Made by a program: the position numbers and the translations under genes
In this document: piece by piece, positions 10,073-53,601 of the stretch
Numbering within the stretch: position 1 is the first letter of the stretch
Layout of the letters: every line of letters begins with the position of its first letter
The notes under the pieces: model-generated
Database searches by the model: none
What the model was told of the DNA's origin: nothing
The model's input: only the letters and a program-made list of their open reading frames with translations
Source: Lepidodermella squamata
Taxonomy: Eukaryota; Animalia; Gastrotricha
Length of the DNA: 64,000 bases
Reading direction: 5' to 3'
Assembly (NCBI GenBank): GCA_047495785.1
Contig: JBLDXI010000025.1
Coordinates: 1,550,001-1,614,000, forward strand

Positions 10073-10235
10073 TCCATTAATTTTACCTAAGCTGAACAAT
10101 AATTCCTCAAACAAGCAGTAAGAATCGAGGATGTTGGATTGATAGGAGTCGCTTTTGAAAATGTCGCTTTAACCTGCAATTGAAATCCAGGCCTAATTAT
10201 CTCCCGCTGAAATTTTCGAAATAACAATTAAAAAA

Positions 10236-12127: not shown

Positions 12128-14738
12128 TCATCTTGGTGCAGCGATCTCTCTGGAGTGGAGGGTCCCCGGCTTAGCAGCATGGGGTTTCATGTAGCTGGAT
12201 ATCGACCAAAAGAAGGAGTTGGACAAAGACATAGCTAATCCCGCAAAAGCAACGACAACAATCTGTGAACTGGCTTTCCCATCAAGGACAAGCAACGCCA
12301 ATGCTAGGCTGAATAGCAGCATTGATTGAGCTGCTAAAGCAGATGAGATCATGCCGAATTCTGGGCAACGGCTCATGTTAGTTTTGCTTGACTTTATTCG
12401 ATAGATCCCGCGTAGACCAACCATCAAAACGGCGAGGTTGACAAACAGCAGTGCAATCATCATGGCTATCTGATTTGGAGCAGAGCATATCACCGACATC
12501 GGCTCATTAATAGTATCAGATTCGATAAGGTAGAAGGACATCTCGTACTGTATGAGAGAGCAGGTCATCGAGTCACCGATCAAATAAATGCCGGCGGCTA
12601 GTCCGCAAAAGATGCTGAAAATAGGAGATACACCGGTGGATATCTTATCCGCTGCTCTCAAATGAATCTTCCTCAAAGCTCGTAGCTCGTTATCGTTATC
12701 TGTGCGCTGTATTGCGATTCTTTGTGCAGTGACGTTGCTTACTCGTGAGTTGGCTGTTCTTTGAGAAGAAATGTTGGTGGCGCGGCTTATGCGAGCTTCG
12801 GCTATCACAACTGCGATTTCGTATAGCTTCACCGCGAGAAAATGTGATCTAGCCGAGAGGAGACAATTCAAAGCTGAGATCGCTACGACGAACAAGATGT
12901 AGCGAGAATAAGTCAAATTCAAATGCAACGGGTGTTGCGGGTCTAGACTGTTTCCGCCTTCATAAACGAACAACACTGATACTGCATTCGTTAGCAAACA
13001 AATAAACATTCCCAGAGTCTTAGTTCTCCAAAAGGTAATGCCGGCTTTCAAAGTGCCACGAAACTTTTTGTACAGCTTTCGTGATAGGTGTATCAACTGA
13101 AGTGCTGACAAGATACCTGCTAAGACACCAACAGTAGGTATAGACCATGGAGGGTTCCGAGTTGGTATTTTAAGAATAGCTGTGACGTCTTTCGGCCGCT
13201 TCCCTCCCCAAGCATTCCATGAAAAGTCGCTCAGGATGTAATTTGTAGCCGAATCCCAAACATTCACCAAACTTTGGCCATTCCAGTATTTAAACAAGGC
13301 ATCAGGCTGCACCAATCCATCTTTCGTGTATCTTATCATGGCTGTTCTTAGACCTCTTAGCAAAAGATTCCTATGAACTTCGTTGAGAACTTTCGTGAAC
13401 AGCGACTTGTTCTGCGATGAAAAGTAGTCACTTAGCGAGAGGTTGTAGTCTGCTTTCAGAATCTTCTCCGCACCGGCCAGAGTCCACAGTGCCTTGACAG
13501 TCATATCGTAGCATGTGTATCGGAAAATATACTCAGGAGGCCGGTACTTGTTCAAATACTCGGGCGCGTCAAGAGCTTGATCAAGCTCAGTCAGAGTGTA
13601 GCCAAGTTGAGATTTGAAATCTGGCGTTGGCTGTCCACCCTGGTACTCCCAGAAAATGTACGGATACTGCTTCAGGATAGTCTCCCTTGTACACAATGTT
13701 CCGGTTACAACAGCTGGCAAGTTTCCGGGTTCGAAATACCCGTTCGCATTGACGATGAAAACATATCGTGCTCCAGTGATCCCAGCACTATATGCTTCGC
13801 ATAAAAATGTCCAGAGAACTCCGTAAATCGTGGATGGAGCAATAATATGGATAATCCTTGCGTCAGCGCGTCGGAGAGCTTCCATGAGTGATTTTTCAAC
13901 TTTTCCGACGATTACCTCAACTGCGGCGGCCGTGGCATTGGCTTTGACTCCAGCTGTCACGAAGCCCATAGCATTAGTCACAAAATCGCGGACCACAACG
14001 ATTGAGAATCGATTCCAGTTTCCGAACTGAAAAATCCACAACAAGCCATCATAATTAAATTTTCTGGATTTGACACGAGATATTCACCCTGCAATCTTTA
14101 CACTTTGTACCTTAATGTTATAAAATTGAACATCAGGGAAACCTCCTGTCAGAAATATATACATCGATTACAATTCAAGAAGAGCTATGATTGTTGAACA
14201 TGACCGTATAAGATACAACGATCAGCTGAAACTCACTGACCTGTTTATAGAAATCGAAGTAACGAGACTCAGTTCCAAGTGCCGCTGTCAGATAAAAGTT
14301 CGGAAACCAATGGCGCTGCGTTACCATCGCCTGAAAGTTGCACGCCACAGCGACAGCCAGCAAATCGACATGGTGTAACATACCGCTGATACCTCGACAA
14401 GAGTCAGGCATAAATGGCCCTAGGATGATTGGCGATGGAAAGGTCCCATTGCCGAAGAGACCTGCGGTAATTTCCTCCACGTACTGCATCACAACGTAAC
14501 CAGCTCGAGACGCCTTATCGTCTTCATAGCGAACGACAACTTCGTAGTCGGGCAGAAGGGTGGCATCAGCATTCACGCGATCGACTACCAGTTGAGTTGT
14601 AGCTTTACAGGTCAAGCTGTAGTTTGTTAAAACACCTGTGAAGCTCATTATTTCGGGGATGACGAGTTTTTTCCTTTCAGTGTTCGCGGCTCCGATCAAT
14701 CCCAGGCATCCCAAGATTAACTCTACAGATTTAAGCAT
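12128..14738 (-). CDS. Orphan class C GPCR, paralog 3
   Basis: Exons 14738-14241 and 14026-12128. Same architecture and intron position as paralogs 1 and 2. Confidence 0.85.
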
Positions 14739-35589: not shown

Positions 35590-36200
35590 AGAAGGCGAAG
35601 CATAAACGCACTCGGGCGAATATTCAATATTCTGTAAACAATCCGATACAGCCTTGAAATTACTAGTAGGCTCAAACTTTTCTTTGTTATACGCACCAGC
35701 AAACTGTTTCCTGAAAACTTTTCCTGAAAACTTCAGCCTTTTCCGAGTCGCTAACAATTGGTTCGTTTTCATACACGATGGCAGGTATAGCAGGACGAGA
35801 GCTAAATCGAAGCGAGAAGTAGTTGTATAAATCATTAATTTCACTATTTGGCAGTAGATTGTCTTCATAACTACGCCGGGCCTTACGGATTTTGGTGTCG
35901 TAAAGGCTACTGGCAGTTTTGTAGCGAACATAGTTAGGTGATGTTTTTCCATTTTTTACCCAATTGGCAAACAAACGGCTTTTACGGTTAGATAGCCGCA
36001 CAAGTTCAGAGGACATCCACGGCATTCGACGCTTCTTTCGTTTGCGCGACTTACACCGAGGTACAAACAGCAAGATTCCCTTATAAAGAGCATGAAGATA
36101 ACGAGTATAGCAAAGGTCCACAGATAGATTAGCGAATGTCTCTATCCAGTTAATAGAATCCAGATAGTTAGAGAAACTGACGTAGTCACATTTGTTGAAT
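35590..36200 (-). mobile_element. CR1-like LINE ORF2 fragment (endonuclease-RT linker)
   Basis: FNKCDYVSFSNYLDSINWIETF...MPWMSSELVRLSNRKSRLF...IVSDSEKAEVF is typical of the CR1/L2 linker. Frameshifted, and truncated at the palindrome boundary. Confidence 0.8.
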
Positions 36201-36206
36201 GATGAT

Positions 36207-36866
36207 GATGATGATGATGAGTTTTCGCTGGAAGACCAGGAGAGATCGATTACCTGGTCGAGGGTGATTGCAATCTTTGTCAGCAAGGCATACATTCAAG
36301 ATGACGATTGCAAGGCCGAGTGGAAGATGACAACTGACCAGCGTAAAATGTCGCTTCTTTGCAAGTTGGACAGAAGCTCGACAGGCGATCTCCTTCCGGC
36401 ACTTGCAAGATTAAACAACACGCCGTCGATTTCTCAGTTTGACTGTGAATTCGACGAGAAGCGCAGTCGATTCGACGAAGACTGTGCTGCCCTTCTAGCG
36501 AAAATTATTGAGAAAGCCAAAGCTACCATCCGCCTTCAAGACTTGCCACCCCCTCCAGCATATGAAAATGTCGCGAAGGTTGTGCGTGCAGAAGCACTCA
36601 CTCCTACATTGTTGATGGTACAACCGCGTGACAGCGCAATTCAGATTGATAATTCTCCCGAAAATCAAGCCGAAGAGAAGAGAAAGCGGAAGCGCAACGT
36701 CGCTGCGATAGTTACGCCTGTCGTAATAATTGTCATTGCTGCCGTTATTGTTGGCGTTCTTTTTGGTGTTATTGGTAATGACTTATATTTCCGAGAAACA
36801 GCTTTCCACTATGACGGGAAAATTTCCTGTCAGTTCGGATTTCCCGTCATAGCGGAAAATTTGTGA
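36207..36866 (+). pseudogene. 5'-truncated duplicate of the last TIR/TM exon of the multi-TIR gene
   Basis: Near-identical inverted copy of 51302-50643. Starts mid-TIR5 in a GAT run fused to the CR1 fragment, with no ATG or upstream exons. Confidence 0.85.
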
Positions 36867-37574
36867 ATAACATAATGTTAGGGCAAAGTCAGACTTTGGT
36901 CCTGTCAGGGGCGTAGCCAGGAAGGGTAGTTCCTTTTTCCAAACATCTCAAAAAACATCAAACTTCTAGCGCCAGATTTATTAGGGCAATCCATTGTTTC
37001 AAAAGAATTCAGTATTAAAACTCATCCGCCCATTGTATGTTGCTGCAACATACAGTAACATACAGAAAAATCCCGCTACATGCAATATTGTTACTCAATT
37101 TTTCTGAATAAAATTGATGAAAAAGTATACCGAAAATAGCATGGCCTAATAAATGTTTCCCCGGCTGTTGAAAGTGGGCGCTCAAATTAATATAAAAACC
37201 CAACATTTCAGAAATTTTAACTTTTGATTGTGTGCTATAAAATTTGTGCTGAGAATAGCAAGAAGCCTGAAATTACTCCGAAAAGAAGATCTTACACCGA
37301 GAAATCGCCATCCCGACATAGCGGAAAATGTTTGCATATAATAATGTTAGGGCAAAGTCAGACTTCGGTCCTGCCCGTAGCCAGTTATTAACTGCGCCGC
37401 GCTCGAGCCCGTGTGCAACTTTTACTGAAAGTGGAACGATTTTGAGCATATCTCCCTTAAATACACACGCAGCCCACTGTCAAAACGAGCTGATGTGTTG
37501 GTGGAAAACAATGGGACCAGTGCTATTTTTGACCGGCCACCCGACAGAGCACGTTTCAGGCTTTGGCCCAAATA

Positions 37575-37950
37575 ATAATTTATTTATTTATTTATTATTT
37601 GAAAGCTCATACGCCCAATAGAGGGCAGCTTGACAATGTTAAGGAAAACAACATATAGTTGCAGGACAAGTTCAGATTATATGACAGGAAGGTGTAGTAG
37701 GGAAAACAAAGTTATAGATCAGACACTCAATTAATTATGTTCTGATGTCAAACTAAACGACAAAAATCGCAACAAGAATCGTTAAGTACAGCATAGCAGT
37801 ATAAACATTAAACATAAAAATAAAATCACAAATTGCATTTAATATTTCATCTCAAGCATAACCAGAACAAGGCCTCCGCTAATTTTTAACTAACTTTGAT
37901 TTCCCAGCATTGGTAGCGTAACAATGATTGTTCACAGCTTCGCGGCATTC
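37575..37950 (-). mobile_element. L2-like LINE 3' UTR fragment with (AATA)n tail (left-arm copy)
   Basis: 37820-37950 matches the reverse complement of 35216-35340. The tail appears as TTTATTTATTTA at about 37578-37600. Confidence 0.65.
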
Positions 37951-38167
37951 CTCGGTAATAGAATATAGCTGTCGTTAGAGAGCATCGGTTCTCATTACCT
38001 CGACTAAAGCATTAGTAAATTTGATTTCGGTTCAATGCCAGGTGAATATCCCTTCACCAGCTGTTAAGAGCAACGAGGAATGGCTCTGCGTGTTCACCTT
38101 GTTCACCTAACCACACCCTCGAAGCATCATCTCTCGCTGGCTACTGTTTTCTTGAAGCCACTGAATT

Positions 38168-41100
38168 ATGTTACGTTTTACGTTTATTTGTAGCTTTGTA
38201 TTAATAGGCATTCAAGACAACACCACAAAGGCATACAGACGGCCATCTGCAACGTGGACTTCTTCGACCAATTCAACTTCTCGGGCTATATTTTCGTCTT
38301 CTCCGATCGATTCGCCCGCTGCGGCGAACAATTGGCCTTCTCCGACCAATTCACCCTCTTTGGTCGATTCGGTTCCTACGGCCAATCGGCCCGCTGTGGC
38401 GAACAATTGGCCTTCTCCGACCAATTCACCCTCTTTGGTCGATTCGGTTCCTACGGCCAATCGGCCCGCTGTGGCGAACAATTGGCCTTCTTCGACCAAT
38501 TCAACTTCTCGGGCTATATTTTCGTCTTCTCCGATCGATTCGCCCGCTGCGGCGAACAATTGGCCTTCTCCGACCAATTCACCCTCTTTGGTCGATTCGG
38601 TTCCTACGGCCAATCGGCCCGCTGTGGCGAACAATTGGCCTTCTCCGACCAATTCACCCTCTTTGGTCGATTCGGTTCCTACGGCCAATCGGCCCGCTGT
38701 GGCGAACAATTGGCCTTCTCCGACCAATTCACCCTCTTTGGTCGATTCGGTTCCTACCGCTGCGGCGAACAATTGGCCTTCTCCGACCAATTCACCCTCT
38801 TTGGTCGATTCGGTTCCTACGGCCAATCGGCCCGCTGTGGCGAACAATTGGCCTTCTCCGACCAATTCACCCTCTTTGGTCGATTCGGTTCCTACGGCCA
38901 ATCGGCCCGCTGTGGCGAACAATTGGCCTTCTCCGACCAATTCACCCTCTTTGGTCGATTCGGTTCCTACGGCCAATCGGCCCGCTGTGGCGAACAATTG
39001 GCCTTCTCCGACCAATTCACCCTCTTTGGTCGATTCGGTTCCTACGGCCAATCGGCCCGCTGTGGCGAACAATTGGCCTTCTCCGACCAATTCACCCTCT
39101 TTGGTCGATTCGGTTCCTACCGCTGCGGCGAACAATTGGCCTTCTCCGACCAATTCACCCTCTTTGGTCGATTCGGTTCCTACCGCTGCGGCGAACAATT
39201 GGCCTTCTCCGACCAATTCACCCTCTTTGGTCGATTCGGTTCCTACCGCTGCGGCGAACAATTGGCCTTCTCCGACCAATTCACCCTCTTTGGTCGATTC
39301 GGTTCCTACGGCCAATCGGCCCGCTGTGGCAAACAATTGGCCTTCTCCGACCAATTCACCCTCTTTGGTCGATTCGGCTCCTACGGCCAATCGGCCCGCT
39401 GTGGCGAACAATTGGCCTTCTCCGACCAATTCACCCTCTTTGGTCGATTCGGTTCCTACGGCCAATCGGCCCGCTGTGGCGAACAATTGGCCTTCTCCGA
39501 CCAATTCACCCTCTTTGGTCGATTCGGTTCCTACCGCTGCGGCGAACAATTGGCCTTCTCCGACCAATTCACCCTCTTTGGTCGATTCGGTTCCTACGGC
39601 CAATCGGCCCGCTGTGGCGAACAATTGGCCTTCTCCGACCAATTCACCCTCTTTGGTCGATTCGGTTCCTACGGCCAATCGGCCCGCTGTGGCGAACAAT
39701 TGGCCTTCTCCGACCAATTCACCCTCTTTGGTCGATTCGGTTCCTACGGCCAATCGGCCCGCTGTGGCGAACAATTGGCCTTCTCCGACCAATTCACCCT
39801 CTTTGGTCGATTCGGTTCCTACGGCCAATCGGCCCGCTGTGGCGAACAATTGGCCTTCTCCGACCAATTCACCCTCTTTGGTCGATTCGGTTCCTACCGC
39901 TGCGGCGAACAATTGGCCTTCTCCGACCAATTCACCCTCTTTGGTCGATTCGGTTCCTACCGCTGCGGCGAACAATTGGCCTTCTCCGACCAATTCACCC
40001 TCTTTGGTCGATTCGGTTCCTACCGCTGCGGCGAACAATTGGCCTTCTCCGACCAATTCACCCTCTTTGGTCGATTCGGTTCCTACGGCCAATCGGCCCG
40101 CTGTGGCAAACAATTGGCCTTCTCCGACCAATTCACCCTCTTTGGTCGATTCGGCTCCTACGGCCAATCGGCCCGCTGTGGCGAACAATTGGCCTTCTCC
40201 GACCAATTCACCCTCTTTGGTCGATTCGGTTCCTACGGCCAATCGGCCCGCTGTGGCGAACAATTGGCCTTCTCCGACCAATTCACCCTCTTTGGTCGAT
40301 TCGGTTCCTACCGCTGCGGCGAACAATTGGCCTTCTCCGACCAATTCACCCTCTTTGGTCGATTCGGTTCCTACGGCCAATCGGCCCGCTGTGGCGAACA
40401 ATTGGCCTTCTCCGACCAATTCACCCTCTTTGGTCGATTCGGTTCCTACGGCCAATCGGCCCGCTGTGGCGAACAATTGGCCTTCTCCGACCAATTCACC
40501 CTCTTTGGTCGATTCGGTTCCTGCGGCCAATCGGCCCGCTGTGGCGAACAATTGGCCTTCTCCGACCAATTCACCCTCTTTGGTCGATTCGGTTCCTACG
40601 GCCAATCGGCCCGCTGTGGCGAACAATTGGCCTTCTCCGACCAATTCACCCTCTTTGGTCGATTCGGTTCCTACCGCTGCGGCGAACAATTGGCCTTCTC
40701 CGACCAATTCACCCTCTTTGGTCGATTCGGTTCCTACCGCTGCGGCGAACAATTGGCCTTCTCCGACCAATTCACCCTCTTTGGTCGATTCGGTTCCTAC
40801 CGCTGCGGCGAACAATTGGCCTTCTCCGACCAATTCACCCTCTTTGGTCGATTCGGTTCCTACGGCCAATCGGCCCGCTGTGGCAAACAATTGGCCTTCT
40901 CCGACCAATTCACCCTCTTTGGTCGATTCGGCTCCTACGGCCAATCGGCCCGCTGTGGCGAACAATTGGCCTTCTCCGACCAATTCACCCTCTTTGGTCG
41001 ATTCGGTTCCTACGGCCAATCGGCCCGCTGTGGCGAACAATTGGCCTTCTCCGACCAATTCACCCTCTTTGGTCGATTCGGTTCCTACCGCTGCGGCGAA

Positions 41101-44100
41101 CAATTGGCCTTCTCCGACCAATTCACCCTCTTTGGTCGATTCGGTTCCTACGGCCAATCGGCCCGCTGTGGCGAACAATTGGCCTTCTCCGACCAATTCA
41201 CCTTCTTTGGTCGATTCGGTTCCTACCGCTGCGGCGAACAATTGGCCTTCTCCGACCAATTCACCCTCTTTGGTCGATTCGGTTCCTACGGCCAATCGGC
41301 CCGCTGCGGCGAACAATTGGCCTTCTCCGACCAATTCACCCTCTTTGGTCGATTCGGTTCCTACCGCTGCGGCGAACAATTGGCCTTCTCCGACCAATTC
41401 ACCCTCTTTGGTCGATTCGGTTCCTACCGCTGCGGCGAACAATTGGCCTTCTCCGACCAATTCACCCTCTTTGGTCGATTCGGTTCCTACCGCTGCGGCG
41501 AACAATTGGCCTTCTCCGACCAATTCACCCTCTTTGGTCGATTCGGTTCCTACCGCTGCGGCGAACAATTGGCCTTCTCCGACCAATTCACCCTCTTTGG
41601 TCGATTCGGTTCCTACGGCCAATCGGCCCGCTGTGGCGAACAATTGGCCTTCTCCGACCAATTCACCCTCTTTGGTCGATTCACCCTCTTTGGTCGATTC
41701 GGTTCCTACGGCCAATCGGCCCGCTGTGGCGAACAATTGGCCTTCTCCGACCAATTCACCTTCTTTGGTCGATTCGGTTCCTACCGCTGCGGCGAACAAT
41801 TGGCCTTCTCCGACCAATTCACCCTCTTTGGTCGATTCGGTTCCTACGGCCAATCGGCCCGCTGCGGCGAACAATTGGCCTTCTCCGACCAATTCACCCT
41901 CTTTGGTCGATTCGGTTCCTACCGCTGCGGCGAACAATTGGCCTTCTCCGACCAATTCACCCTCTTTGGTCGATTCGGTTCCTACCGCTGCGGCGAACAA
42001 TTGGCCTTCTCCGACCAATTCACCCTCTTTGGTCGATTCGGTTCCTACCGCTGCGGCGAACAATTGGCCTTCTCCGACCAATTCACCCTCTTTGGTCGAT
42101 TCGGTTCCTACGGCCAATCGGCCCGCTGTGGCGAACAATTGGCCTTCTCCGACCAATTCACCCTCTTTGGTCGATTCACCCTCTTTGGTCGATTCGGTTC
42201 CTACGGCCAATCGGCCCGCTGTGGCGAACAATTGGCCTTCTCCGACCAATTCACCCTCTTTGGTCGATTCACCCTCTTTGGTCGATTCGGTTCCTACGGC
42301 CAATCGGCCCGCTGTGGCGAACAATTGGCCTTCTCCGACCAATTCACCCTCTTTGGTCGATTCGGTTCCTACCGCTGCGGCGAACAATTGGCCTTCTCCG
42401 ACCAATTCACCCTCTTTGGTCGATTCGGTTCCTACCGCTGCGGCGAACAATTGGCCTTCTCCGACCAATTCACCCTCTTTGGTCGATTCGGTTCCTACCG
42501 CTGCGGCGAACAATTGGCCTTCTCCGACCAATTCACCCTCTTTGGTCGATTCGGTTCCTACGGCCAATCGGCCCGCTGTGGCGAACAATTGGCCTTCTCC
42601 GACCAATTCACCCTCTTTGGTCGATTCGGTTCCTACCGCTGCGGCGAACAATTGGCCTTCTCCGACCAATTCACCCTCTTTGGTCGATTCGGTTCCTACC
42701 GCTGCGGCGAACAATTGGCCTTCTCCGACCAATTCACCCTCTTTGGTCGATTCGGTTCCTACCGCTGCGGCGAACAATTGGCCTTCTCCGACCAATTCAC
42801 CCTCTTTGGTCGATTCGGTTCCTACCGCTGCGGCGAACAATTGGCCTTCTCCGACCAATTCACCCTCTTTGGTCGATTCGGCTCCTACGGCCAATCGGCC
42901 CGCTGTGGCGAACAATTGGCCTTCTCCGACCAATTCACCCTCTTTGGTCGATTCGGTTCCTACGGCCAATCGGCCCGCTGTGGCGAACAATTGGCCTTCT
43001 CCGACCAATTCACCCTCTTTGGTCGATTCGGTTCCTACGGCCAATCGGCCCGCTGTGGCGAACAATTGGCCTTCTCCGACCAATTCACCCTCTTTGGTCG
43101 ATTCGGTTCCTACGGCCAATCGGCCCGCTGTGGCGAACAATTGGCCTTCTCCGACCAATTCACCTTCTTTGGTCGATTCGGTTCCTACCGCTGCGGCGAA
43201 CAATTGGCCTTCTCCGACCAATTCACCCTCTTTGGTCGATTCGGTTCCTACCGCTGCGGCGAACAATTGGCCTTCTCCGACCAATTCACCCTCTTTGGTC
43301 GATTCGGTTCCTACGGCCAATCGGCCCGCTGTGGCGAACAATTGGCCTTCTCCGACCAATTCACCCTCTTTGGTCGATTCGGTTCCTACGGCCAATCGGC
43401 CCGCTGTGGCGAACAATTGGCCTTCTCCGACCAATTCACCCTCTTTGGTCGATTCGGTTCCTACGGCCAATCGGCCCGCTGTGGCGAACAATTGGCCTTC
43501 TCCGACCAATTCACCCTCTTTGGTCGATTCGGTTCCTACGGCCAATCGGCCCGCTGTGGCGAACAATTGGCCTTCTCCGACCAATTCACCCTCTTTGGTC
43601 GATTCGGTTCCTACCGCTGCGGCGAACAATTGGCCTTCTCCGACCAATTCACCCTCTTTGGTCGATTCGGTTCCTACCGCTGCGGCGAACAATTGGCCTT
43701 CTCCGACCAATTCACCCTCTTTGGTCGATTCGGCTCCTACGGCCAATCGGCCCGCTGTGGCGAACAATTGGCCTTCTCCGACCAATTCACCCTCTTTGGT
43801 CGATTCGGTTCCTACGGCCAATCGGCCCGCTGTGGCGAACAATTGGCCTTCTCCGACCAATTCACCCTCTTTGGTCGATTCGGTTCCTACGGCCAATCGG
43901 CCCGCTGTGGCGAACAATTGGCCTTCTCCGACCAATTCACCCTCTTTGGTCGATTCGGTTCCTACGGCCAATCGGCCCGCTGTGGCGAACAATTGGCCTT
44001 CTCCGACCAATTCACCTTCTTTGGTCGATTCGGTTCCTACCGCTGCGGCGAACAATTGGCCTTCTCCGACCAATTCACCCTCTTTGGTCGATTCGGTTCC

Positions 44101-47100
44101 TACCGCTGCGGCGAACAATTGGCCTTCTCCGACCAATTCACCCTCTTTGGTCGATTCGGTTCCTACGGCCAATCGGCCCGCTGTGGCGAACAATTGGCCT
44201 TCTCCGACCAATTCACCCTCTTTGGTCGATTCGGTTCCTACGGCCAATCGGCCCGCTGTGGCGAACAATTGGCCTTCTCCGACCAATTCACCCTCTTTGG
44301 TCGATTCGGTTCCTACGGCCAATCGGCCCGCTGTGGCGAACAATTGGCCTTCTCCGACCAATTCACCCTCTTTGGTCGATTCGGTTCCTACGGCCAATCG
44401 GCCCGCTGTGGCGAACAATTGGCCTTCTCCGACCAATTCACCCTCTTTGGTCGATTCGGTTCCTACCGCTGCGGCGAACAATTGGCCTTCTCCGACCAAT
44501 TCACCCTCTTTGGTCGATTCGGTTCCTACCGCTGCGGCGAACAATTGGCCTTCTCCGACCAATTCACCCTCTTTGGTCGATTCGGTTCCTACCGCTGCGG
44601 CGAACAATTGGCCTTCTCCGACCAATTCACCCTCTTTGGTCGATTCGGTTCCTACCGCTGCGGCGAACAATTGGCCTTCTCCGACCAATTCACCCTCTTT
44701 GGTCGATTCGGTTCCTACCGCTGCGGCGAACAATTGGCCTTCTCCGACCAATTCACCCTCTTTGGTCGATTCGGTTCCTACCGCTGCGGCGAACAATTGG
44801 CCTTCTCCGACCAATTCACCCTCTTTGGTCGATTCGGTTCCTACCGCTGCGGCGAACAATTGGCCTTCTCCGACCAATTCACCCTCTTTGGTCGATTCGG
44901 CTCCTACGGCCAATCGGCCCGCTGTGGCGAACAATTGGCCTTCTCCGACCAATTCACCCTCTTTGGTCGATTCGGTTCCTACGGCCAATCGGCCCGCTGT
45001 GGCGAACAATTGGCCTTCTCCGACCAATTCACCCTCTTTGGTCGATTCGGTTCCTACGGCCAATCGGCCCGCTGTGGCGAACAATTGGCCTTCTCCGACC
45101 AATTCACCCTCTTTGGTCGATTCGGTTCCTACGGCCAATCGGCCCGCTGTGGCGAACAATTGGCCTTCTCCGACCAATTCACCTTCTTTGGTCGATTCGG
45201 TTCCTACCGCTGCGGCGAACAATTGGCCTTCTCCGACCAATTCACCCTCTTTGGTCGATTCGGTTCCTACCGCTGCGGCGAACAATTGGCCTTCTCCGAC
45301 CAATTCACCCTCTTTGGTCGATTCGGTTCCTACGGCCAATCGGCCCGCTGTGGCGAACAATTGGCCTTCTCCGACCAATTCACCCTCTTTGGTCGATTCG
45401 GTTCCTACGGCCAATCGGCCCGCTGTGGCGAACAATTGGCCTTCTCCGACCAATTCACCCTCTTTGGTCGATTCGGTTCCTACGGCCAATCGGCCCGCTG
45501 TGGCGAACAATTGGCCTTCTCCGACCAATTCACCCTCTTTGGTCGATTCGGTTCCTACGGCCAATCGGCCCGCTGTGGCGAACAATTGGCCTTCTCCGAC
45601 CAATTCACCCTCTTTGGTCGATTCGGTTCCTACCGCTGCGGCGAACAATTGGCCTTCTCCGACCAATTCACCCTCTTTGGTCGATTCGGTTCCTACCGCT
45701 GCGGCGAACAATTGGCCTTCTCCGACCAATTCACCCTCTTTGGTCGATTCGGTTCCTACCGCTGCGGCGAACAATTGGCCTTCTCCGACCAATTCACCCT
45801 CTTTGGTCGATTCGGTTCCTACCGCTGCGGCGAACAATTGGCCTTCTCCGACCAATTCACCCTCTTTGGTCGATTCGGCTCCTACGGCCAATCGGCCCGC
45901 TGTGGCGAACAATTGGCCTTCTCCGACCAATTCACCCTCTTTGGTCGATTCGGTTCCTACGGCCAATCGGCCCGCTGTGGCGAACAATTGGCCTTCTCCG
46001 ACCAATTCACCCTCTTTGGTCGATTCGGTTCCTACGGCCAATCGGCCCGCTGTGGCGAACAATTGGCCTTCTCCGACCAATTCACCCTCTTTGGTCGATT
46101 CGGTTCCTACGGCCAATCGGCCCGCTGTGGCGAACAATTGGCCTTCTCCGACCAATTCACCTTCTTTGGTCGATTCGGTTCCTACCGCTGCGGCGAACAA
46201 TTGGCCTTCTCCGACCAATTCACCCTCTTTGGTCGATTCGGTTCCTACCGCTGCGGCGAACAATTGGCCTTCTCCGACCAATTCACCCTCTTTGGTCGAT
46301 TCGGTTCCTACGGCCAATCGGCCCGCTGTGGCGAACAATTGGCCTTCTCCGACCAATTCACCCTCTTTGGTCGATTCGGTTCCTACGGCCAATCGGCCCG
46401 CTGTGGCGAACAATTGGCCTTCTCCGACCAATTCACCCTCTTTGGTCGATTCGGTTCCTACGGCCAATCGGCCCGCTGTGGCGAACAATTGGCCTTCTCC
46501 GACCAATTCACCCTCTTTGGTCGATTCGGTTCCTACGGCCAATCGGCCCGCTGTGGCGAACAATTGGCCTTCTCCGACCAATTCACCCTCTTTGGTCGAT
46601 TCGGTTCCTACCGCTGCGGCGAACAATTGGCCTTCTCCGACCAATTCACCCTCTTTGGTCGATTCGGTTCCTACCGCTGCGGCGAACAATTGGCCTTCTC
46701 CGACCAATTCACCCTCTTTGGTCGATTCGGTTCCTACCGCTGCGGCGAACAATTGGCCTTCTCCGACCAATTCACCCTCTTTGGTCGATTCGGTTCCTAC
46801 GGCCAATCGGCCCGCTGTGGCGAACAATTGGCCTTCTCCGACCAATTCACCCTCTTTGGTCGATTCGGTTCCTACCGCTGCGGCGAACAATTGGCCTTCT
46901 CCGACCAATTCACCCTCTTTGGTCGATTCGGTTCCTACCGCTGCGGCGAACAATTGGCCTTCTCCGACCAATTCACCCTCTTTGGTCGATTCGGTTCCTA
47001 CCGCTGCGGCGAACAATTGGCCTTCTCCGACCAATTCACCCTCTTTGGTCGATTCGGTTCCTACCGCTGCGGCGAACAATTGGCCTTCTCCGACCAATTC

Positions 47101-47641
47101 ACCCTCTTTGGTCGATTCGGTTCCTACCGCTGCGGCGAACAATTGGCCTTCTCCGACCAATTCACCCTCTTTGGTCGATTCGGTTCCTACGGCCAATCGG
47201 CCCGCTGTGGCGAACAATTGGCCTTCTCCGACCAATTCACCCTCTTTGGTCGATTCGGTTCCTACGGCCAATCGGCCCGCTGTGGCGAACAATTGGCCTT
47301 CTCCGACCAATTCACCCTCTTTGGTCGATTCGGTTCCTACCGCTGCGGCGAACAATTGGCCTTCTCCGACCAATTCACCCTCTTTGGTCGATTCGGTTCC
47401 TACGGCCAATCGGCCCGCTGTGGCGAACAATTGGCCTTCTCCGACCAATTCACCTTCTTTGGTCGATTCGGTTCCTACCGCTGCGGCGAACAATTGGCCT
47501 TCTCTGACCAATTCACCCTCTTTGGTCGATTCGGTTCCTACGGCCAATCGGCCCGCTGTGGCGAACAATTGGCCTTCTCCGACCAATTCACCCTCTTTGG
47601 TCGATTCGGTTCCTACGGCCAATCGGCATTCTGATTTGTAA
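38168..47641 (+). CDS. Giant Ser/Thr/Pro/Asn-rich mucin-like repeat ORF, 3157 aa (expanded paralog of 48265-49341)
   Basis: Hydrophobic N-terminus MLRFTFICSFVLIG, then 25-aa and 21-aa units. All length variants are multiples of 3. The C-terminal repeat block of the paralog is missing. May be a non-expressed duplicate. Confidence 0.5.
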   Translation: MLRFTFICSFVLIGIQDNTTKAYRRPSATWTSSTNSTSRAIFSSSPIDSPAAANNWPSPTNSPSLVDSVPTANRPAVANNWPSPTNSPSLVDSVPTANRPAVANNWPSSTNSTSRAIFSSSPIDSPAAANNWPSPTNSPSLVDSVPTANRPAVANNWPSPTNSPSLVDSVPTANRPAVANNWPSPTNSPSLVDSVPTAAANNWPSPTNSPSLVDSVPTANRPAVANNWPSPTNSPSLVDSVPTANRPAVANNWPSPTNSPSLVDSVPTANRPAVANNWPSPTNSPSLVDSVPTANRPAVANNWPSPTNSPSLVDSVPTAAANNWPSPTNSPSLVDSVPTAAANNWPSPTNSPSLVDSVPTAAANNWPSPTNSPSLVDSVPTANRPAVANNWPSPTNSPSLVDSAPTANRPAVANNWPSPTNSPSLVDSVPTANRPAVANNWPSPTNSPSLVDSVPTAAANNWPSPTNSPSLVDSVPTANRPAVANNWPSPTNSPSLVDSVPTANRPAVANNWPSPTNSPSLVDSVPTANRPAVANNWPSPTNSPSLVDSVPTANRPAVANNWPSPTNSPSLVDSVPTAAANNWPSPTNSPSLVDSVPTAAANNWPSPTNSPSLVDSVPTAAANNWPSPTNSPSLVDSVPTANRPAVANNWPSPTNSPSLVDSAPTANRPAVANNWPSPTNSPSLVDSVPTANRPAVANNWPSPTNSPSLVDSVPTAAANNWPSPTNSPSLVDSVPTANRPAVANNWPSPTNSPSLVDSVPTANRPAVANNWPSPTNSPSLVDSVPAANRPAVANNWPSPTNSPSLVDSVPTANRPAVANNWPSPTNSPSLVDSVPTAAANNWPSPTNSPSLVDSVPTAAANNWPSPTNSPSLVDSVPTAAANNWPSPTNSPSLVDSVPTANRPAVANNWPSPTNSPSLVDSAPTANRPAVANNWPSPTNSPSLVDSVPTANRPAVANNWPSPTNSPSLVDSVPTAAANNWPSPTNSPSLVDSVPTANRPAVANNWPSPTNSPSLVDSVPTAAANNWPSPTNSPSLVDSVPTANRPAAANNWPSPTNSPSLVDSVPTAAANNWPSPTNSPSLVDSVPTAAANNWPSPTNSPSLVDSVPTAAANNWPSPTNSPSLVDSVPTAAANNWPSPTNSPSLVDSVPTANRPAVANNWPSPTNSPSLVDSPSLVDSVPTANRPAVANNWPSPTNSPSLVDSVPTAAANNWPSPTNSPSLVDSVPTANRPAAANNWPSPTNSPSLVDSVPTAAANNWPSPTNSPSLVDSVPTAAANNWPSPTNSPSLVDSVPTAAANNWPSPTNSPSLVDSVPTANRPAVANNWPSPTNSPSLVDSPSLVDSVPTANRPAVANNWPSPTNSPSLVDSPSLVDSVPTANRPAVANNWPSPTNSPSLVDSVPTAAANNWPSPTNSPSLVDSVPTAAANNWPSPTNSPSLVDSVPTAAANNWPSPTNSPSLVDSVPTANRPAVANNWPSPTNSPSLVDSVPTAAANNWPSPTNSPSLVDSVPTAAANNWPSPTNSPSLVDSVPTAAANNWPSPTNSPSLVDSVPTAAANNWPSPTNSPSLVDSAPTANRPAVANNWPSPTNSPSLVDSVPTANRPAVANNWPSPTNSPSLVDSVPTANRPAVANNWPSPTNSPSLVDSVPTANRPAVANNWPSPTNSPSLVDSVPTAAANNWPSPTNSPSLVDSVPTAAANNWPSPTNSPSLVDSVPTANRPAVANNWPSPTNSPSLVDSVPTANRPAVANNWPSPTNSPSLVDSVPTANRPAVANNWPSPTNSPSLVDSVPTANRPAVANNWPSPTNSPSLVDSVPTAAANNWPSPTNSPSLVDSVPTAAANNWPSPTNSPSLVDSAPTANRPAVANNWPSPTNSPSLVDSVPTANRPAVANNWPSPTNSPSLVDSVPTANRPAVANNWPSPTNSPSLVDSVPTANRPAVANNWPSPTNSPSLVDSVPTAAANNWPSPTNSPSLVDSVPTAAANNWPSPTNSPSLVDSVPTANRPAVANNWPSPTNSPSLVDSVPTANRPAVANNWPSPTNSPSLVDSVPTANRPAVANNWPSPTNSPSLVDSVPTANRPAVANNWPSPTNSPSLVDSVPTAAANNWPSPTNSPSLVDSVPTAAANNWPSPTNSPSLVDSVPTAAANNWPSPTNSPSLVDSVPTAAANNWPSPTNSPSLVDSVPTAAANNWPSPTNSPSLVDSVPTAAANNWPSPTNSPSLVDSVPTAAANNWPSPTNSPSLVDSAPTANRPAVANNWPSPTNSPSLVDSVPTANRPAVANNWPSPTNSPSLVDSVPTANRPAVANNWPSPTNSPSLVDSVPTANRPAVANNWPSPTNSPSLVDSVPTAAANNWPSPTNSPSLVDSVPTAAANNWPSPTNSPSLVDSVPTANRPAVANNWPSPTNSPSLVDSVPTANRPAVANNWPSPTNSPSLVDSVPTANRPAVANNWPSPTNSPSLVDSVPTANRPAVANNWPSPTNSPSLVDSVPTAAANNWPSPTNSPSLVDSVPTAAANNWPSPTNSPSLVDSVPTAAANNWPSPTNSPSLVDSVPTAAANNWPSPTNSPSLVDSAPTANRPAVANNWPSPTNSPSLVDSVPTANRPAVANNWPSPTNSPSLVDSVPTANRPAVANNWPSPTNSPSLVDSVPTANRPAVANNWPSPTNSPSLVDSVPTAAANNWPSPTNSPSLVDSVPTAAANNWPSPTNSPSLVDSVPTANRPAVANNWPSPTNSPSLVDSVPTANRPAVANNWPSPTNSPSLVDSVPTANRPAVANNWPSPTNSPSLVDSVPTANRPAVANNWPSPTNSPSLVDSVPTAAANNWPSPTNSPSLVDSVPTAAANNWPSPTNSPSLVDSVPTAAANNWPSPTNSPSLVDSVPTANRPAVANNWPSPTNSPSLVDSVPTAAANNWPSPTNSPSLVDSVPTAAANNWPSPTNSPSLVDSVPTAAANNWPSPTNSPSLVDSVPTAAANNWPSPTNSPSLVDSVPTAAANNWPSPTNSPSLVDSVPTANRPAVANNWPSPTNSPSLVDSVPTANRPAVANNWPSPTNSPSLVDSVPTAAANNWPSPTNSPSLVDSVPTANRPAVANNWPSPTNSPSLVDSVPTAAANNWPSLTNSPSLVDSVPTANRPAVANNWPSPTNSPSLVDSVPTANRHSDL
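38318..47626. repeat. 9.3-kb coding-type minisatellite of 75-bp and 63-bp units with higher-order structure
   Basis: Core GAACAATTGGCCTTCTCCGACCAATTCACCCTCTTTGGTCGATTCGGTTCCTAC, with or without a 12-bp segment. About 135 units, estimated from length. Confidence 0.97.
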
Positions 47642-48264: not shown

Positions 48265-49341
48265 TCAATTTCTAGGTACACCAAAAAGACGCAAAATATT
48301 AGACATAGAGGGCGGAGCGACATAATTAGACGCCAGGTTCCAATTGGGCGGAGCGACATAATTAGACTCAAGGTTCCAATTGGGCGGAGCGACATAATTA
48401 GATGCCAGGTTCCAATTGGGCGGAGCGACATAATTAGACTCAAGGTTCCAATTGGGCGGAGCGACATAATTAGACGAAGGGACCAAGGAAGGATTTGGCC
48501 AATTGTTCGCCACAGCGGGCCGATTGGCCGTAGGAACCGAATCGACCAAAGAGGGTGAATTGGTCGGAGAAGGCCAATTGTTCGCCACAGCGGGCCGATT
48601 GGCCGTAGGAACCGAATCGACCAAAGAGGGTGAATTGGTCGGAGAAGGCCAGTTGTTCGCCACAGCGGGCCGATTGGCCGTAGGAACCGAATCGACCAAA
48701 GAGGGTGAATTGGTCGGAGAAGGCCAATTGTTCGCCACAGCGGGCCGATTGGCCGTAGGAACCGAATTGACCAAAGAGGGTGAATTGGTCGGAGAAGGCC
48801 AATTGTTCGCCACAGCGGGCCGATTGGCCGTAGGAACCGAATCGACCAAAGAGGGTGAATTGGTCGGAGAAGGCCAATTGTTCGCCACAGCGGGCCGATT
48901 GGCCGTAGGAACCGAATCGACCAAAGAGGGTGAATTGGTCGGAGAAGGCCAATTGTTCGCCACAGCGGGCCGATTGGCCGTAGGAACCGAATCGACCAAA
49001 GAGGGTGAATTGGTCGGAGAAGGCCAATTGTTCGCCACAGCGGGCCGATTGGCCGTAGGAACCGAATCGACCAAAGAGGGTGAATTGGTCGGAGAAGGCC
49101 AATTGTTCGCCACAGCGGGCCGATTGGCCGTAGGAACCGAATCGACCAAAGAGGGTGAATTGGTCGGAGAAGGCCAATTGTTCGCCGCAGCGGGCGAATC
49201 GATCGGAGAAGACGAAAATATAGCCCGAGAAGTTGAATTGGTCGAAGAAGTCCACGTTGCAGATGGCCGTCTGTAAGCCTTTGTGGTGTTGTCTTGAATG
49301 CCTATTAATACAAAGCTACAAATAAGCGTAAAACGTAACAT
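48265..49341 (-). CDS. Mucin-like repeat protein, 358 aa (or terminal exon 49301-48265 of the multi-TIR gene)
   Basis: 9 x 25-aa NNWPSPTNSPSLVDSVPTANRPAVA, then 4.5 x 12-aa SNYVAPPNWNL(E/A). AATAAA lies just after the stop (48261-48256). Confidence 0.7.
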   Translation of the reverse strand: MLRFTLICSFVLIGIQDNTTKAYRRPSATWTSSTNSTSRAIFSSSPIDSPAAANNWPSPTNSPSLVDSVPTANRPAVANNWPSPTNSPSLVDSVPTANRPAVANNWPSPTNSPSLVDSVPTANRPAVANNWPSPTNSPSLVDSVPTANRPAVANNWPSPTNSPSLVDSVPTANRPAVANNWPSPTNSPSLVNSVPTANRPAVANNWPSPTNSPSLVDSVPTANRPAVANNWPSPTNSPSLVDSVPTANRPAVANNWPSPTNSPSLVDSVPTANRPAVANNWPNPSLVPSSNYVAPPNWNLESNYVAPPNWNLASNYVAPPNWNLESNYVAPPNWNLASNYVAPPSMSNILRLFGVPRN

Positions 49342-49558
49342 AATTCAGTGGCTTCAAGAAAACAGTAGCCAGCGAGAGATGATGCTTCGAGGGTGTGGTT
49401 AGGTGAACAAGGTGAACACGCAGAGCCATTCCTCGTTGCTCTTAACAGCTGGTGAAGGGATATTCACCTGGCATTGAACCGAAATCAAATTTACTAATGC
49501 TTTAGTCGAGGTAATGAGAACCGATGCTCTCTAACGACAGCTATATTCTATTACCGAG

Positions 49559-49934
49559 GAATGCCGCGAAGCTGTGAACAATCATTGTTACGCTACCAAT
49601 GCTGGGAAATCAAAGTTAGTTAAAAATTAGCGGAGGCCTTGTTCTGGTTATGCTTGAGATGAAATATTAAATGCAATTTGTGATTTTATTTTTATGTTTA
49701 ATGTTTATACTGCTATGCTGTACTTAACGATTCTTGTTGCGATTTTTGTCGTTTAGTTTGACATCAGAACATAATTAATTGAGTGTCTGATCTATAACTT
49801 TGTTTTCCCTACTACACCTTCCTGTCATATAATCTGAACTTGTCCTGCAACTATATGTTGTTTTCCTTAACATTGTCAAGCTGCCCTCTATTGGGCGTAT
49901 GAGCTTTCAAATAATAAATAAATAAATAAATTAT
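49559..49934 (+). mobile_element. L2-like LINE 3' UTR fragment with (AATA)n tail (right-arm copy)
   Basis: Inverted copy of 37575-37950. 49560-49690 matches 35216-35340. Confidence 0.65.
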
Positions 49935-50642
49935 TATTTGGGCCAAAGCCTGAAACGTGCTCTGTCGGGTGGCCGGTCAAAAATAGCACTGGTCCCATTG
50001 TTTTCCACCAACACATCAGCTCGTTTTGACAGTGGGCTGCGTGTGTATTTAAGGGAGATATGCTCAAAATCGTTCCACTTTCAGTAAAAGTTGCACACGG
50101 GCTCGAGCGCGGCGCAGTTAATAACTGGCTACGGGCAGGACCGAAGTCTGACTTTGCCCTAACATTATTATATGCAAACATTTTCCGCTATGTCGGGATG
50201 GCGATTTCTCGGTGTAAGATCTTCTTTTCGGAGTAATTTCAGGCTTCTTGCTATTCTCAGCACAAATTTTATAGCACACAATCAAAAGTTAAAATTTCTG
50301 AAATGTTGGGTTTTTATATTAATTTGAGCGCCCACTTTCAACAGCCGGGGAAACATTTATTAGGCCATGCTATTTTCGGTATACTTTTTCATCAATTTTA
50401 TTCAGAAAAATTGAGTAACAATATTGCATGTAGCGGGATTTTTCTGTATGTTACTGTATGTTGCAGCAACATACAATGGGCGGATGAGTTTTAATACTGA
50501 ATTCTTTTGAAACAATGGATTGCCCTAATAAATCTGGCGCTAGAAGTTTGATGTTTTTTGAGATGTTTGGAAAAAGGAACTACCCTTCCTGGCTACGCCC
50601 CTGACAGGACCAAAGTCTGACTTTGCCCTAACATTATGTTAT

Positions 50643-53601
50643 TCACAAATTTTCCGCTATGACGGGAAATCCGAACTGACAGGAAATTTTCCCGTCATAG
50701 TGGAAAGCTGTTTCTCGGAAATATAAGTCATTACCAATAACACCAAAAAGAACGCCAACAATAACGGCAGCAATGACAATTATTACGACAGGCGTAACTA
50801 TCGCAGCGACGTTGCGCTTCCGCTTTCTCTTCTCTTCGGCTTGATTTTCGGGAGAATTATCAATCTGAATTGCGCTGTCACGCGGTTGTACCATCAACAA
50901 TGTAGGAGTGAGTGCTTCTGCACGCACAACCTTCGCGACATTTTCATATGCTGGAGGGGGTGGCAAGTCTTGAAGGCGGATGGTAGCTTTGGCTTTCTCA
51001 ATAATTTTCGCTAGAAGGGCAGCACAGTCTTCGTCGAATCGACTGCGCTTCTCGTCGAATTCACAGTCAAACTGAGAAATCGACGGCGTGTTGTTTAATC
51101 TTGCAAGTGCCGGAAGGAGATCGCCTGTCGAGCTTCTGTCCAACTTGCAAAGAAGCGACATTTTACGCTGGTCAGTTGTCATCTTCCACTCGGCCTTGCA
51201 ATCGTCATCTTGAATGTATGCCTTGCTGACAAAGACGACAATCACCCTCGACCAGGTAATCGATCTCTCCTGGTCTTCCAGCGAAAACTCATCATCATCA
51301 TCGTCGAAAACGTCACATTCAACATTTACCCCATTAGTCAGTAAATATTGAGTAACATCTGCCACCAGATTGAACTGATACGTGTGGTAGCTTATAAAAA
51401 TGTCATGGAACATTTTATTCCTCTCAGCAGCCGGAAGAAGCGATGTTACAGCCGTGCCTCGTTTACCCTTTGGCCTTTTCAACGGCTTCCGAGTTGGAGC
51501 TTCGCCTTGAATTTCACGAACCTCCGAAATCAACTTTGCATCAGCTTTCCGCGACGGATTCCGCATGGTTTTGCTGAATTTGATTTCAAATGCGTGTTTG
51601 TCGATGAAATCAAGATGGATGTATTTAGTGACGTCGAATCGCTCGAGGCAGCACTTGATAAACGGCTTTTTGAGAACTCCGGTGACTTTTATTTCATCCA
51701 TGCATCGAGCGCTGCGCGCTAAATCTTCAGTTAGACATACCAGGACAATTTCGGATTGCCTAATTTTCTTCAAAGATTTGGGCATTAAATTTTGCTTTCC
51801 AGCGAAGCTGACAAGTTATACCTCTCTGATTTCCAAGAATTTATTTCCACCAATCGTCTCTTCTTGCTCGAAATCGCAAAAGACTTTCTTTTTCTGGCTC
51901 TTCAAAAAGCTGTAGATATGCTTAGCAGCGTTAATCTGATATCGGCTGTAAGATATATAGATGTCATAGATCGGTTTGGGCAGTGGAGCCTCTGAAAATC
52001 CAAATTTTAGAGCTGCAGAACAGTTTCAGGGTTCAATTTTACCTGTTTCGCCCAACAATTGAGCTAGTTTCTCGTGCAGAGGCGCTCTGTGCCAACCCAA
52101 GTAGCAATCGACGTAGAGCTTGTTACTGGACATGAAGTCCAACTCCTTTTCGCTGGAAATGTCAAAGCCCTCCTCGGCTATGCATATCATGAATTCTTTC
52201 TGTCGTTTTTTCGTATACCTTGCCTCGTCCATGCAATTCTGACTTTTCGCGTAAGCGCTGCTCACGCACAGAAGAACGATTGCAGAATTCACTATACCGT
52301 CAGCCATCGATTGGTAGAGCGTTTTCCCCGTGGTGATGTTGTCTTTATCGAACCATACGGTTAGTCCTTTTTCATTTCGCAAAAAATCAACTAATTTCTT
52401 GACGCTCTCCTGCTGCGCCCAGTTGTAACTGATGAAAACGTCGTATTGGTAATGTTTCTCAGCCACGGGCTGCATGTTCTGATCACCGTTTTCTTGAAGT
52501 CTCGCGTTTGGGTTTAGAACTTTCCTGATAGCTTCTACCAGCGTAGTGCCAGCTTGGTCCGCGACGGACTTTTCAATACGAGACGCATCGAAGTCGACAA
52601 TCTCTTTGTATTCCGTAATGTAGAATCCATCAGAGTGGTCACCGGTGTTGAACTCGGACATCATGCATGTTATGAACGGTTTCCCAATGAATCGTACGCG
52701 CAGCAGTTGATCCATGCAATCCTCGTCAGTCAAATACTGCTTGCTGCCGCAGACAATAGCAATTTTGGACCTATTTATGATCTGCAATTCAAAAAGCTGC
52801 AAGCCTTGTCTCGTTTTAAAAGAATTGACTTACGTCGCCGTAGGTTTCGTAACTAACGCGGCTGTCAGCTTCAAAATCTACCCAGTATTTGATGTTTTTC
52901 GACCGGAGCTGGTGACAAATTGTTCTCAAGTCTTTTTCTTGTGCCTTGGAATAGCTGACAAAGACTTCGTAATCCGTGGTGATATCACCCTCGCCGCCAT
53001 TTATTGGCACGATGCTAGTCCGTCGATTACTTTGCTTGGCTACTGTGGTGTTATTCGTATTCATCCGCTCCGAATTTCGCGCACGTGGCAACAGATCAGA
53101 CAGAATAGCCAGCACTTGTTTACCATCATTTCGCGGTTCGATGAAGTTGACTTGATATTCGTGGTCTGGGTTGATTTTCAACGCCAAGTAATGCCCAATG
53201 GCTAAATCGTCCTCGATTTTGCACACGACACAGTACTTATTCCGCATCAATGCGTAGAACGCTTCCTTTTGATGATAAGCACTGGTAGCGTAATCTTTGC
53301 TAACACAAATTATTACGACTGCTGACTGGCGAATAGCCTATAACTTAGCTGTCAATAGTTGAGGAGAACTAATTGAGACGTTTACCTCGCGCGTATCTGC
53401 CGTAAGCGCTGCAGCTGCATCCAGTTCGTCATTACCTTCAAAATAAGTCGACCTCTTCGCTTTTCGAATAATCGCCGATAGATCTTCTGCGTGAAATTTC
53501 TGGGAACTATGAGAGCTGATAAATGTGTCGTAGCGGAAATTAGCAGCTGATTTTCCAACCGAGGAGGCTGGTGCAACAGACGAGCGTCTTCTATTTGACA
53601 T
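50643..53601 (-). CDS. Protein with five tandem TIR (TIR_2-type) domains and one C-terminal TM helix, about 917 aa or longer
   Basis: Exons 53601-53386, 53337-52834, 52781-52043, 51991-51822, 51767-50643 (or -50735), with 48-54 nt GT-AG introns in compatible phases. Five box-1 motifs: YDTFISS, YEVFVSY, YDVFISY, YDIYISY, HDIFISY. Each is followed by an S-x-(hydrophobic)-(V/G/L)(S/T)xx(Y/L) strand and an alphaC motif. Then PPPAY, KRKRKR and TM VAAIVTPVVIIVIAAVIVGVLFGVI. Confidence 0.85.

Follow-up and report, generated by a model that had tools for sequence, protein, structure and literature searches.

How many TIR domains can an animal protein carry in a row, and on which side of a membrane would they lie? 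The question is raised by a locus in the genome of the gastrotrich Lepidodermella squamata. The window, i.e., the whole stretch of DNA analyzed, comprises 64,000 nucleotides (contig JBLDXI010000025.1 of assembly GCA_047495785.1, positions 1,550,001 to 1,614,000). On its minus strand, the region 53601..50643 reads as a single gene with five exons, as judged from the sequence and a script check. A first-pass annotation had described five TIR-like units in one reading frame, followed by a single membrane helix, and had set this order against the opposite one of TLRs and IL-1Rs. We tentatively read the locus as one real, lineage-specific animal gene, the product of which would hold five TIR units in the cytosol and carry a single helix near its C-terminus, a build resembling that of tail-anchored proteins. 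The elements of the gene, all on the minus strand and listed from its 5' end, are as follows.

53386..53601, minus strand: exon 1, 72 codons from the ATG at 53601, carrying the N-terminal half of TIR1
53338..53385, minus strand: intron 1, 48 nucleotides, GT..AG, phase 0, within TIR1; it has a 2-nucleotide insertion in a second DNA data set (run X1, described below)
52834..53337, minus strand: exon 2, 168 codons, with the C-terminal half of TIR1, a linker and the N-terminal half of TIR2
52782..52833, minus strand: intron 2, 52 nucleotides, GT..AG, phase 0, within TIR2
52043..52781, minus strand: exon 3, 246 codons and 1 base, with the C-terminal half of TIR2, a linker and the whole of TIR3
51992..52042, minus strand: intron 3, 51 nucleotides, GT..AG, phase 1, between TIR3 and TIR4
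51822..51991, minus strand: exon 4, 170 nucleotides, with the N-terminal half of TIR4 and no Met codon
51768..51821, minus strand: intron 4, 54 nucleotides, GT..AG, phase 0, within TIR4
50643..51767, minus strand: exon 5, read to the stop, with the C-terminal half of TIR4, a basic linker, TIR5, a disordered linker, the transmembrane helix and a tail
51528-51767, minus strand: C-terminal half of TIR4, in exon 5
51003-51419, minus strand: TIR5, in exon 5
50643-50645, minus strand: stop codon that ends the exon 5 frame

The window is eukaryotic, and the locus appears as four long open frames with short gaps between them. All four introns are of the GT-AG type and each has a stop in its read-through frame, so the frame is open only if the introns are removed. 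Because TIR1, TIR2 and TIR4 straddle introns and exon 4 contains no Met codon, all five exons are needed to obtain whole domains. The predicted product has about 917 amino acids, or about 917–935 if an alternative start is allowed, as a second in-frame ATG at 53655 would lengthen the exon 1 product by 18 residues. For intron 3, a second in-frame acceptor is available at 52013, but its use would leave an intron of 29 nucleotides. The joining of the exons was predicted from the sequence, and the searches and structure models reported here were run exon by exon.

To what extent are the five units TIR domains? Pfam TIR_2 (PF13676), the profile that the first-pass annotation had proposed as a check, matched the products of exon 3 (E = 6.5e-24, 85.2 bits), exon 5 (E = 8.5e-12, 46.1 bits, in two stretches) and exon 2 (E = 2.4e-10, 41.4 bits, in two stretches) above the cut-off of 28 bits. 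The match in exon 4 was weak (E = 0.068), and exon 1 had none. TIR1 and TIR2 pass as TIR only when half-domain matches are summed, and TIR4 obtains 28.6 bits only by adding neighboring in-frame matches. A family profile was made from 78 homologues of TIR3, with the window's own row excluded, and was searched against the five exon products. With this profile, TIR3 (131 bits) and TIR5 (42.4 bits) were matched as whole domains. The other three units were matched as halves: TIR1 by a weak N-terminal half in exon 1 (4.0 bits) and a C-terminal half in exon 2 (positions 54-114, 31.7 bits), TIR2 by positions 6-41 in exon 2 (24.3 bits) and 55-138 in exon 3 (20.4 bits), and TIR4 by positions 8-42 in exon 4 (21.7 bits) and 55-134 in exon 5 (33.7 bits). 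The YDTFIS strand of exon 1 lines up with the corresponding strand of the other units, and a phase-0 intron interrupts each of TIR1, TIR2 and TIR4 at one shared position of the domain (profile 42-55). The five units align over both halves, with pairwise identities of 17-34%.

AlphaFold2, used with family alignments, folded TIR3 as a TIR domain with a predicted local distance difference test (pLDDT) score of 88.1, and TIR5 likewise, with a pLDDT near 90 for residues 10-154 of the piece that was modeled. The top matches of both models in the PDB were all TIR domains (Hydra TRR-2, RPP1, RPS4, AbTir, TLR1 and SARM1). The first-pass annotation had called for a model of the spliced protein; the folds obtained are those of TIR3 and TIR5, each from its own exon product. 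Based on their half-domain profile matches, TIR1, TIR2 and TIR4 are probably TIR folds as well. Pfam returned only TIR-type families for the exon products, and no LRR, Ig, SAM, ARM or death domain scored, as the first-pass annotation had supposed. Its count of five TIR units in one frame thus holds, given the matched halves and wholes and the two folds. The break point shared by the split units recurs elsewhere in the 121-Mb genome: at least 74 six-frame TIR_2 matches were found there, and many of them start or stop at profile position 41-48, which suggests an intron site common to much of the TIR family of this genome.

Where would this array of domains be placed in the cell? Three elements follow TIR5 in exon 5.

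50946-50957, minus strand: PPAY (a PPxY motif), in the disordered linker after TIR5, within PPPPAY
50814-50831, minus strand: KRKRKR basic cluster, N-terminal to the transmembrane helix
50733-50810, minus strand: transmembrane helix, a 26-residue hydrophobic stretch with a mean Kyte-Doolittle value of 3.2

The helix is the sole hydrophobic segment in any exon product, no N-terminal hydrophobic segment was found in them by hydropathy, and 29 residues separate the helix from the stop. In the AlphaFold2 model of the exon 5 piece, a low-confidence region (residues 167-188) is followed by one helix (195-241) made up of KRKRKR and the transmembrane segment, and then by a low-confidence tail. Since KRKRKR precedes the helix, the positive-inside rule leads us to expect the TIR units in the cytosol. 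A tail-anchored protein lacks a signal peptide and has its one transmembrane segment no more than about 30-40 residues from the C-terminus; if the protein ends at the stop of the frame as read, it would fit this description. The layout first described, with one membrane helix after five TIR units, a PPxY motif and a basic cluster between them, and an order that is the reverse of that in TLRs and IL-1Rs, with all five TIR units N-terminal to the helix, was therefore recovered in full.

Could any of the units be an NAD-cleaving enzyme (NADase)? The alpha-C motifs read earlier in TIR1 to TIR5 (HQKE, CMDQ, CMDE, CMDE and CKAE) fall in one alignment column. The Glu is present in TIR1, TIR3, TIR4 and TIR5, and TIR2 has Gln in its place, exactly as first described; the Gln codon lies at 52707-52709 in exon 3. 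TIR3 occupies 52056-52460, and its Glu codon is 52224-52226. In the 79-sequence family alignment, four residues are invariant (W39, S76, C79 and E82 in TIR3 numbering). The residues at these positions are Y/S/H/E in TIR1, W/D/C/Q in TIR2, W/S/C/E in TIR3, F/S/C/E in TIR4 and E/D/C/E in TIR5. The first-pass annotation had spoken of four candidate catalytic TIRs. Four units do carry the Glu, but this count was too generous, as TIR3 alone has all four invariant residues. Among solved structures, those nearest to TIR3 in sequence, with weak E-values of 2e-4 to 7e-3, are Cat1, AbTir, L6 and RPP1, which cleave NAD, and in the Cat1 alignment the Glu of TIR3 sits on the Glu of the CWDE motif of Cat1. 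It has been reported that many non-TLR animal TIRs produce cyclic ADP-ribose (cADPR) in a Glu-dependent manner, and that several Glu-bearing human TIRs have no NADase activity in vitro (preprint 10.64898/2026.04.20.719644). NADase activity of TIR3 is plausible; in all five units, such activity is putative. The composite NADase sites in cis that were proposed in the first-pass annotation are pure inference.

Under the tail-anchored reading, the helix would be inserted post-translationally with the N-terminus in the cytosol, placing a string of five TIR units on the cytosolic face of a membrane derived from the endoplasmic reticulum or of the plasma membrane. TIR3 would be the likeliest active or nucleating unit because it is the only one with every family-invariant residue, and, like other non-TLR animal TIRs, may make a cADPR-type signal from NAD+. 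The four divergent units, among them TIR2 with its Glu-to-Gln change, could be docking sites or partners for assembly that the protein itself provides. By increasing the local concentration of TIR, they would allow clustering in the membrane to set off TIR-TIR oligomerization. The PPxY motif in the disordered linker may allow WW-domain ligases of the Nedd4 type to control turnover. One canonical and four degenerate TIR units on a membrane anchor would form a natural test case, which could show how TIR copy number, dead partners and membrane confinement set the threshold of assembly. The significance is limited for now, as this is a single orphan gene of one invertebrate with no orthologue found.

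A second set of sequences bears on whether the gene is intact. Run X1 was the only public sequencing run found to contain the locus. Its contigs pass through the introns without joints and are thus DNA-like, and they diverge from the window by 1.3-1.6%. One contig covers 51156-53907 and differs from the window by 36 substitutions and by two indel events, namely the insertion in intron 1 and another upstream of both candidate ATGs; both fall in the non-coding 18.5% of the contig. The TIR locus is intact in X1. Among the X1 differences listed (40 of 70), those within the gene are 13 nonsynonymous, 9 synonymous and 3 intronic, and the TIR part has 7 nonsynonymous to 4 synonymous. At position 50678 of the window, X1 has TAG where the window has CAG, which places a stop at codon 907 and shortens the tail from 29 to 19 residues.

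Several results weigh against the tail-anchored reading. First, the search of public sequencing runs found no RNA run covering the locus to support splicing and expression, and neither exon product search (see below) found an orthologue with which conservation could be tested. Second, the ratio of 13 nonsynonymous to 9 synonymous differences, among those listed, is only weakly below the neutral expectation. Third, family-invariant residues are lost in four of the five units, with only TIR3 keeping all four. Fourth, proven NADase TIRs (SARM1, AbTir and plant TIRs) share a WxxxE motif, in which a Trp stands four residues ahead of the Glu, and the residues at this position in TIR1 to TIR5 are Y, D, N, R and D, with no Trp. 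The family consensus at this position is Asn, as in TIR3; the lack of the Trp does not exclude activity in this animal TIR family. Finally, a plausible splice donor lies exactly at the end of the transmembrane helix, and the X1 stop cuts the tail short by 10 codons; what follows the helix may be intron instead of coding sequence.

This last point leads to the most serious alternative. The features on which it depends are the following.

50733..50735, minus strand: candidate donor G/GTAATG in the last codon of the transmembrane helix; the exon would end at 50735, in phase 1
49303-49302, minus strand: candidate acceptor AG; the exon would start at 49301 and continue the frame of the donor, across an intron of 1433 nucleotides (50734-49302)
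48265..49341, minus strand: downstream open reading frame (ORF) of 358 amino acids, with a hydrophobic start, NxT/NxS sequons, 25-residue Pro/Ser/Thr-rich repeats and then 12-residue repeats

At 36192-47641, an inverted duplicate contains the repeat ORF and the 3' end of the gene, which runs from the C-terminal half of TIR5 up to the stop.

36192..36866, plus strand: truncated inverted duplicate of the 3' end of the gene, 99% identical over exon 5 residues 155-374

If the donor at 50735/50734 were joined to the acceptor at 49302, the product would be a type II receptor, an "inside-out Toll" with an N-glycosylated, mucin-like Pro/Ser/Thr stalk outside the cell. We consider this possible but unlikely. 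The donor begins with GTAA, as do those of three of the four introns of the gene, and the in-frame acceptor restores a Gly codon. NTT and NST sequons and Pro/Ser/Thr repeats come directly after the junction, as in an ectodomain, and the basic cluster would be on the cytosolic side of the helix. Moreover, the tail after the helix has the X1 nonsense variant and partly overlaps a local 63-nucleotide repeat, the fold-back duplicated the exon of the helix together with the repeat ORF, and bacterial multi-TIR proteins carry a sensor domain beyond their membrane segment. However, the implied intron is about 27 times the length of the other four and includes a 380-bp high-copy element, and the repeat ORF begins with an ATG of its own, after which 14-16 residues plausibly form a signal peptide. 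The 75-bp array of the repeat ORF is open in three of six frames and is perhaps non-coding. The type II product would have no globular ligand-binding domain with a Pfam match; the repeat ORF matched no Pfam family, and no Pfam sensor domain (WD40 or CHASE2) was found beyond the transmembrane helix or in this ORF. All five X1 differences in 49200-49341, worked out by hand, alter an amino acid, and no RNA evidence for the junction was found. The downstream ORF can be read in three ways: as a protein secreted on its own, as an exon that encodes the ectodomain of the TIR protein, or as a non-coding minisatellite. The helix described at first as the single C-terminal anchor is present, but its position at the end of the protein is less certain, as an in-frame splice into the repeat ORF is possible. 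A further elaboration appears doubtful: the mucin-like stalk would vary in length, and its clustering by microbes or lectins would zip the TIR strings together and yield an NAD-derived signal, with TIR3 catalytic and the degenerate units as in-cis partners. If the type II layout were true, it would be a receptor build unknown in animals.

The duplication gives little further information on constraint. Outside the array, the two arms (36204-38320 and 51305-49196) differ at 6 positions in about 2110 nucleotides, too few to be informative. The 75-bp array has 133 copies in the left arm and 9.3 in the right. In the left arm, at 38314-47627, three of its six reading frames are open, with ORFs of 3157, 3126 and 3148 amino acids, so the length of an ORF is no proof of coding here. 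The variants of its unit length (63, 75 and 93 nucleotides) are all multiples of three. The breakpoint of the left copy lies in poly-Asp codons and adjoins an ORF at 35687-36295, which had no Pfam match and, judged by eye, is a fragment of a non-long-terminal-repeat (non-LTR) retrotransposon. The X1 contig is unbroken across 51305, with similar depth on either side; either the fold-back is perhaps missing from X1, or it could be an artefact of the assembly. Two other repeats are found near the 3' end of the gene. The high-copy element of about 380 bp lies at 49554-49939, downstream of the TIR gene and upstream of the repeat ORF, and has at least 14 near-full copies in the genome at about 90% identity. 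A 63-nucleotide direct repeat occurs at 50136-50198 and 50605-50667 (89% identity, 469 nucleotides apart), and its second copy extends over the stop of the TIR frame and the codons just before it.

A different possibility concerns function instead of structure. The protein could be a regulatory decoy without enzymatic activity, to which the other TIR proteins of this TIR-rich genome would bind at the membrane, as to a sink or scaffold, so that their signaling is damped or localized. We regard this as improbable. Degeneration of four of the five units at invariant positions, with no Glu in TIR2, would suit a decoy, the TIR_2 matches in the genome represent many potential partners, and the PPxY motif suggests regulated turnover. 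In contrast, TIR3 keeps all four invariant residues, with a family-profile score of 131 bits, and a scaffold and an enzyme are indistinguishable by sequence alone. The idea that the locus is a silent or decaying gene copy beside transposon debris and a young fold-back duplication has little to commend it: it would fit the lack of an RNA run found to cover the locus, the 13:9 and 7:4 counts among the X1 differences listed, the X1 stop variant near the end and the repeat elements close on either side, but a frame of 917 codons is open across four precisely placed introns even though its units have diverged to 17-34% identity, and both X1 indels avoid the coding sequence. Horizontal transfer from bacteria was rejected, since the high scores of bacterial proteins are sums over many domains, animal proteins with one TIR (Physella, Potamilus and Hydractinia) are closer at 32-37% identity, and spliceosomal introns are present.

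No other close paralogue of the TIR gene was found in the genome. A weak match at G000:C32 was rejected as a paralogue, because it is an MBT-LRR-Roc-COR-TIR protein with one TIR. The region in question (G000:C32:1.88-1.98 Mb; L007 36-5789) contains a cluster of very long open frames, and the frame examined there reads MBT - LRR - Roc - COR-A/B - TIR, i.e., a ROCO protein with a TIR tail. Within the window, a two-part gene is repeated in tandem three times on the minus strand at 420-14738. It consists of a short ORF, which matches ANF_receptor weakly, and then an ORF of 608-638 amino acids with many hydrophobic stretches, and this cluster looks like a receptor expansion of the class C G-protein-coupled type. 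The best matches of a neighboring SLC23 gene are 45-61% identical and are spread over Bilateria.

We return to the tail-anchored reading, and to whether such a protein is known elsewhere. The exon 5 product had no match at E ≤ 0.001 among 5.8 billion proteins of 206-655 amino acids, and a feature search of the ESM Atlas with the same product gave only generic TIR_2 clusters, below 0.9. The exon 3 product had 3220 matches among 1.84 billion cluster representatives. The top-ranked multi-TIR proteins were 26-34% identical, and the highest figure listed was 44%. Single-TIR relatives came from molluscs, a hydrozoan and a chytrid, and single-TIR proteins were up to 37% identical over the whole TIR3 domain. 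In the literature searched, no tail-anchored or C-terminally anchored multi-TIR animal protein was described. An animal protein of five TIRs with a C-terminal anchor is in no database match or searched paper, and tandem arrays themselves are not new. The architecture is therefore unusual in one respect, as the animal five-TIR build was not found elsewhere, but not in another, as N-terminal TIR arrays before a membrane segment are common in cyanobacteria.

The comparison with known systems is as follows. SARM1 is an animal TIR protein with an alpha-C Glu that works by oligomerization; it has ARM and SAM domains, one TIR and a Trp four residues before the Glu. TIR structures of SARM1 are among the fold matches reported above, but its ARM and SAM domains, its single-TIR build and its WxxxE Trp are absent from the protein described here. 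MAVS-type adaptors have a cytosolic, oligomerizing CARD and a helix at the extreme C-terminus. As predicted for the protein here, a C-terminal helix holds a signaling domain; this domain is a CARD instead of TIR, and no sequence relationship is expected. The best-scoring database matches are bacterial, mostly cyanobacterial, multi-TIR proteins, which likewise have 3-7 TIR_2 domains N-terminal to a hydrophobic segment. Examples are P0003 (5xTIR_2 and CHASE2) and P0004 and P0064 (3-5xTIR_2, a hydrophobic segment and WD40). Unlike the protein here, they are intronless and have a large sensor domain past the membrane segment; their identity to it is 26-31%, and they are uncharacterized. In proteins of the P0003, P0004 and P0064 type, the hydrophobic segment comes about 100 residues after the TIR_2 array; they form a large family, of which no description was found. 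The 3xTIR proteins of Clavelina lepadiformis (P0002 and P0014) are similar in being animal proteins of tandem TIR_2 only, with 30-31% identity to TIR3, but they have three units and no hydrophobic helix by hydropathy, and are not orthologues. In Dictyostelium TirC, a TIR is likewise held on the membrane by one helix, and this tethering restrains a toxic, filament-forming NADase TIR; in contrast to the protein here, TirC has one TIR, an N-terminal helix, a bacterial origin and an activity shown experimentally (preprint 10.64898/2026.04.30.722052). The top structural match of the TIR3 model is the TIR of Hydra TRR-2 (TM-score 0.75/0.85), and TLRs and IL-1Rs are single-pass proteins as well. In TLR, IL-1R and TRR-2, however, one TIR lies C-terminal to the transmembrane helix and the ectodomain is N-terminal, whereas here five TIR units lie N-terminal to the helix.

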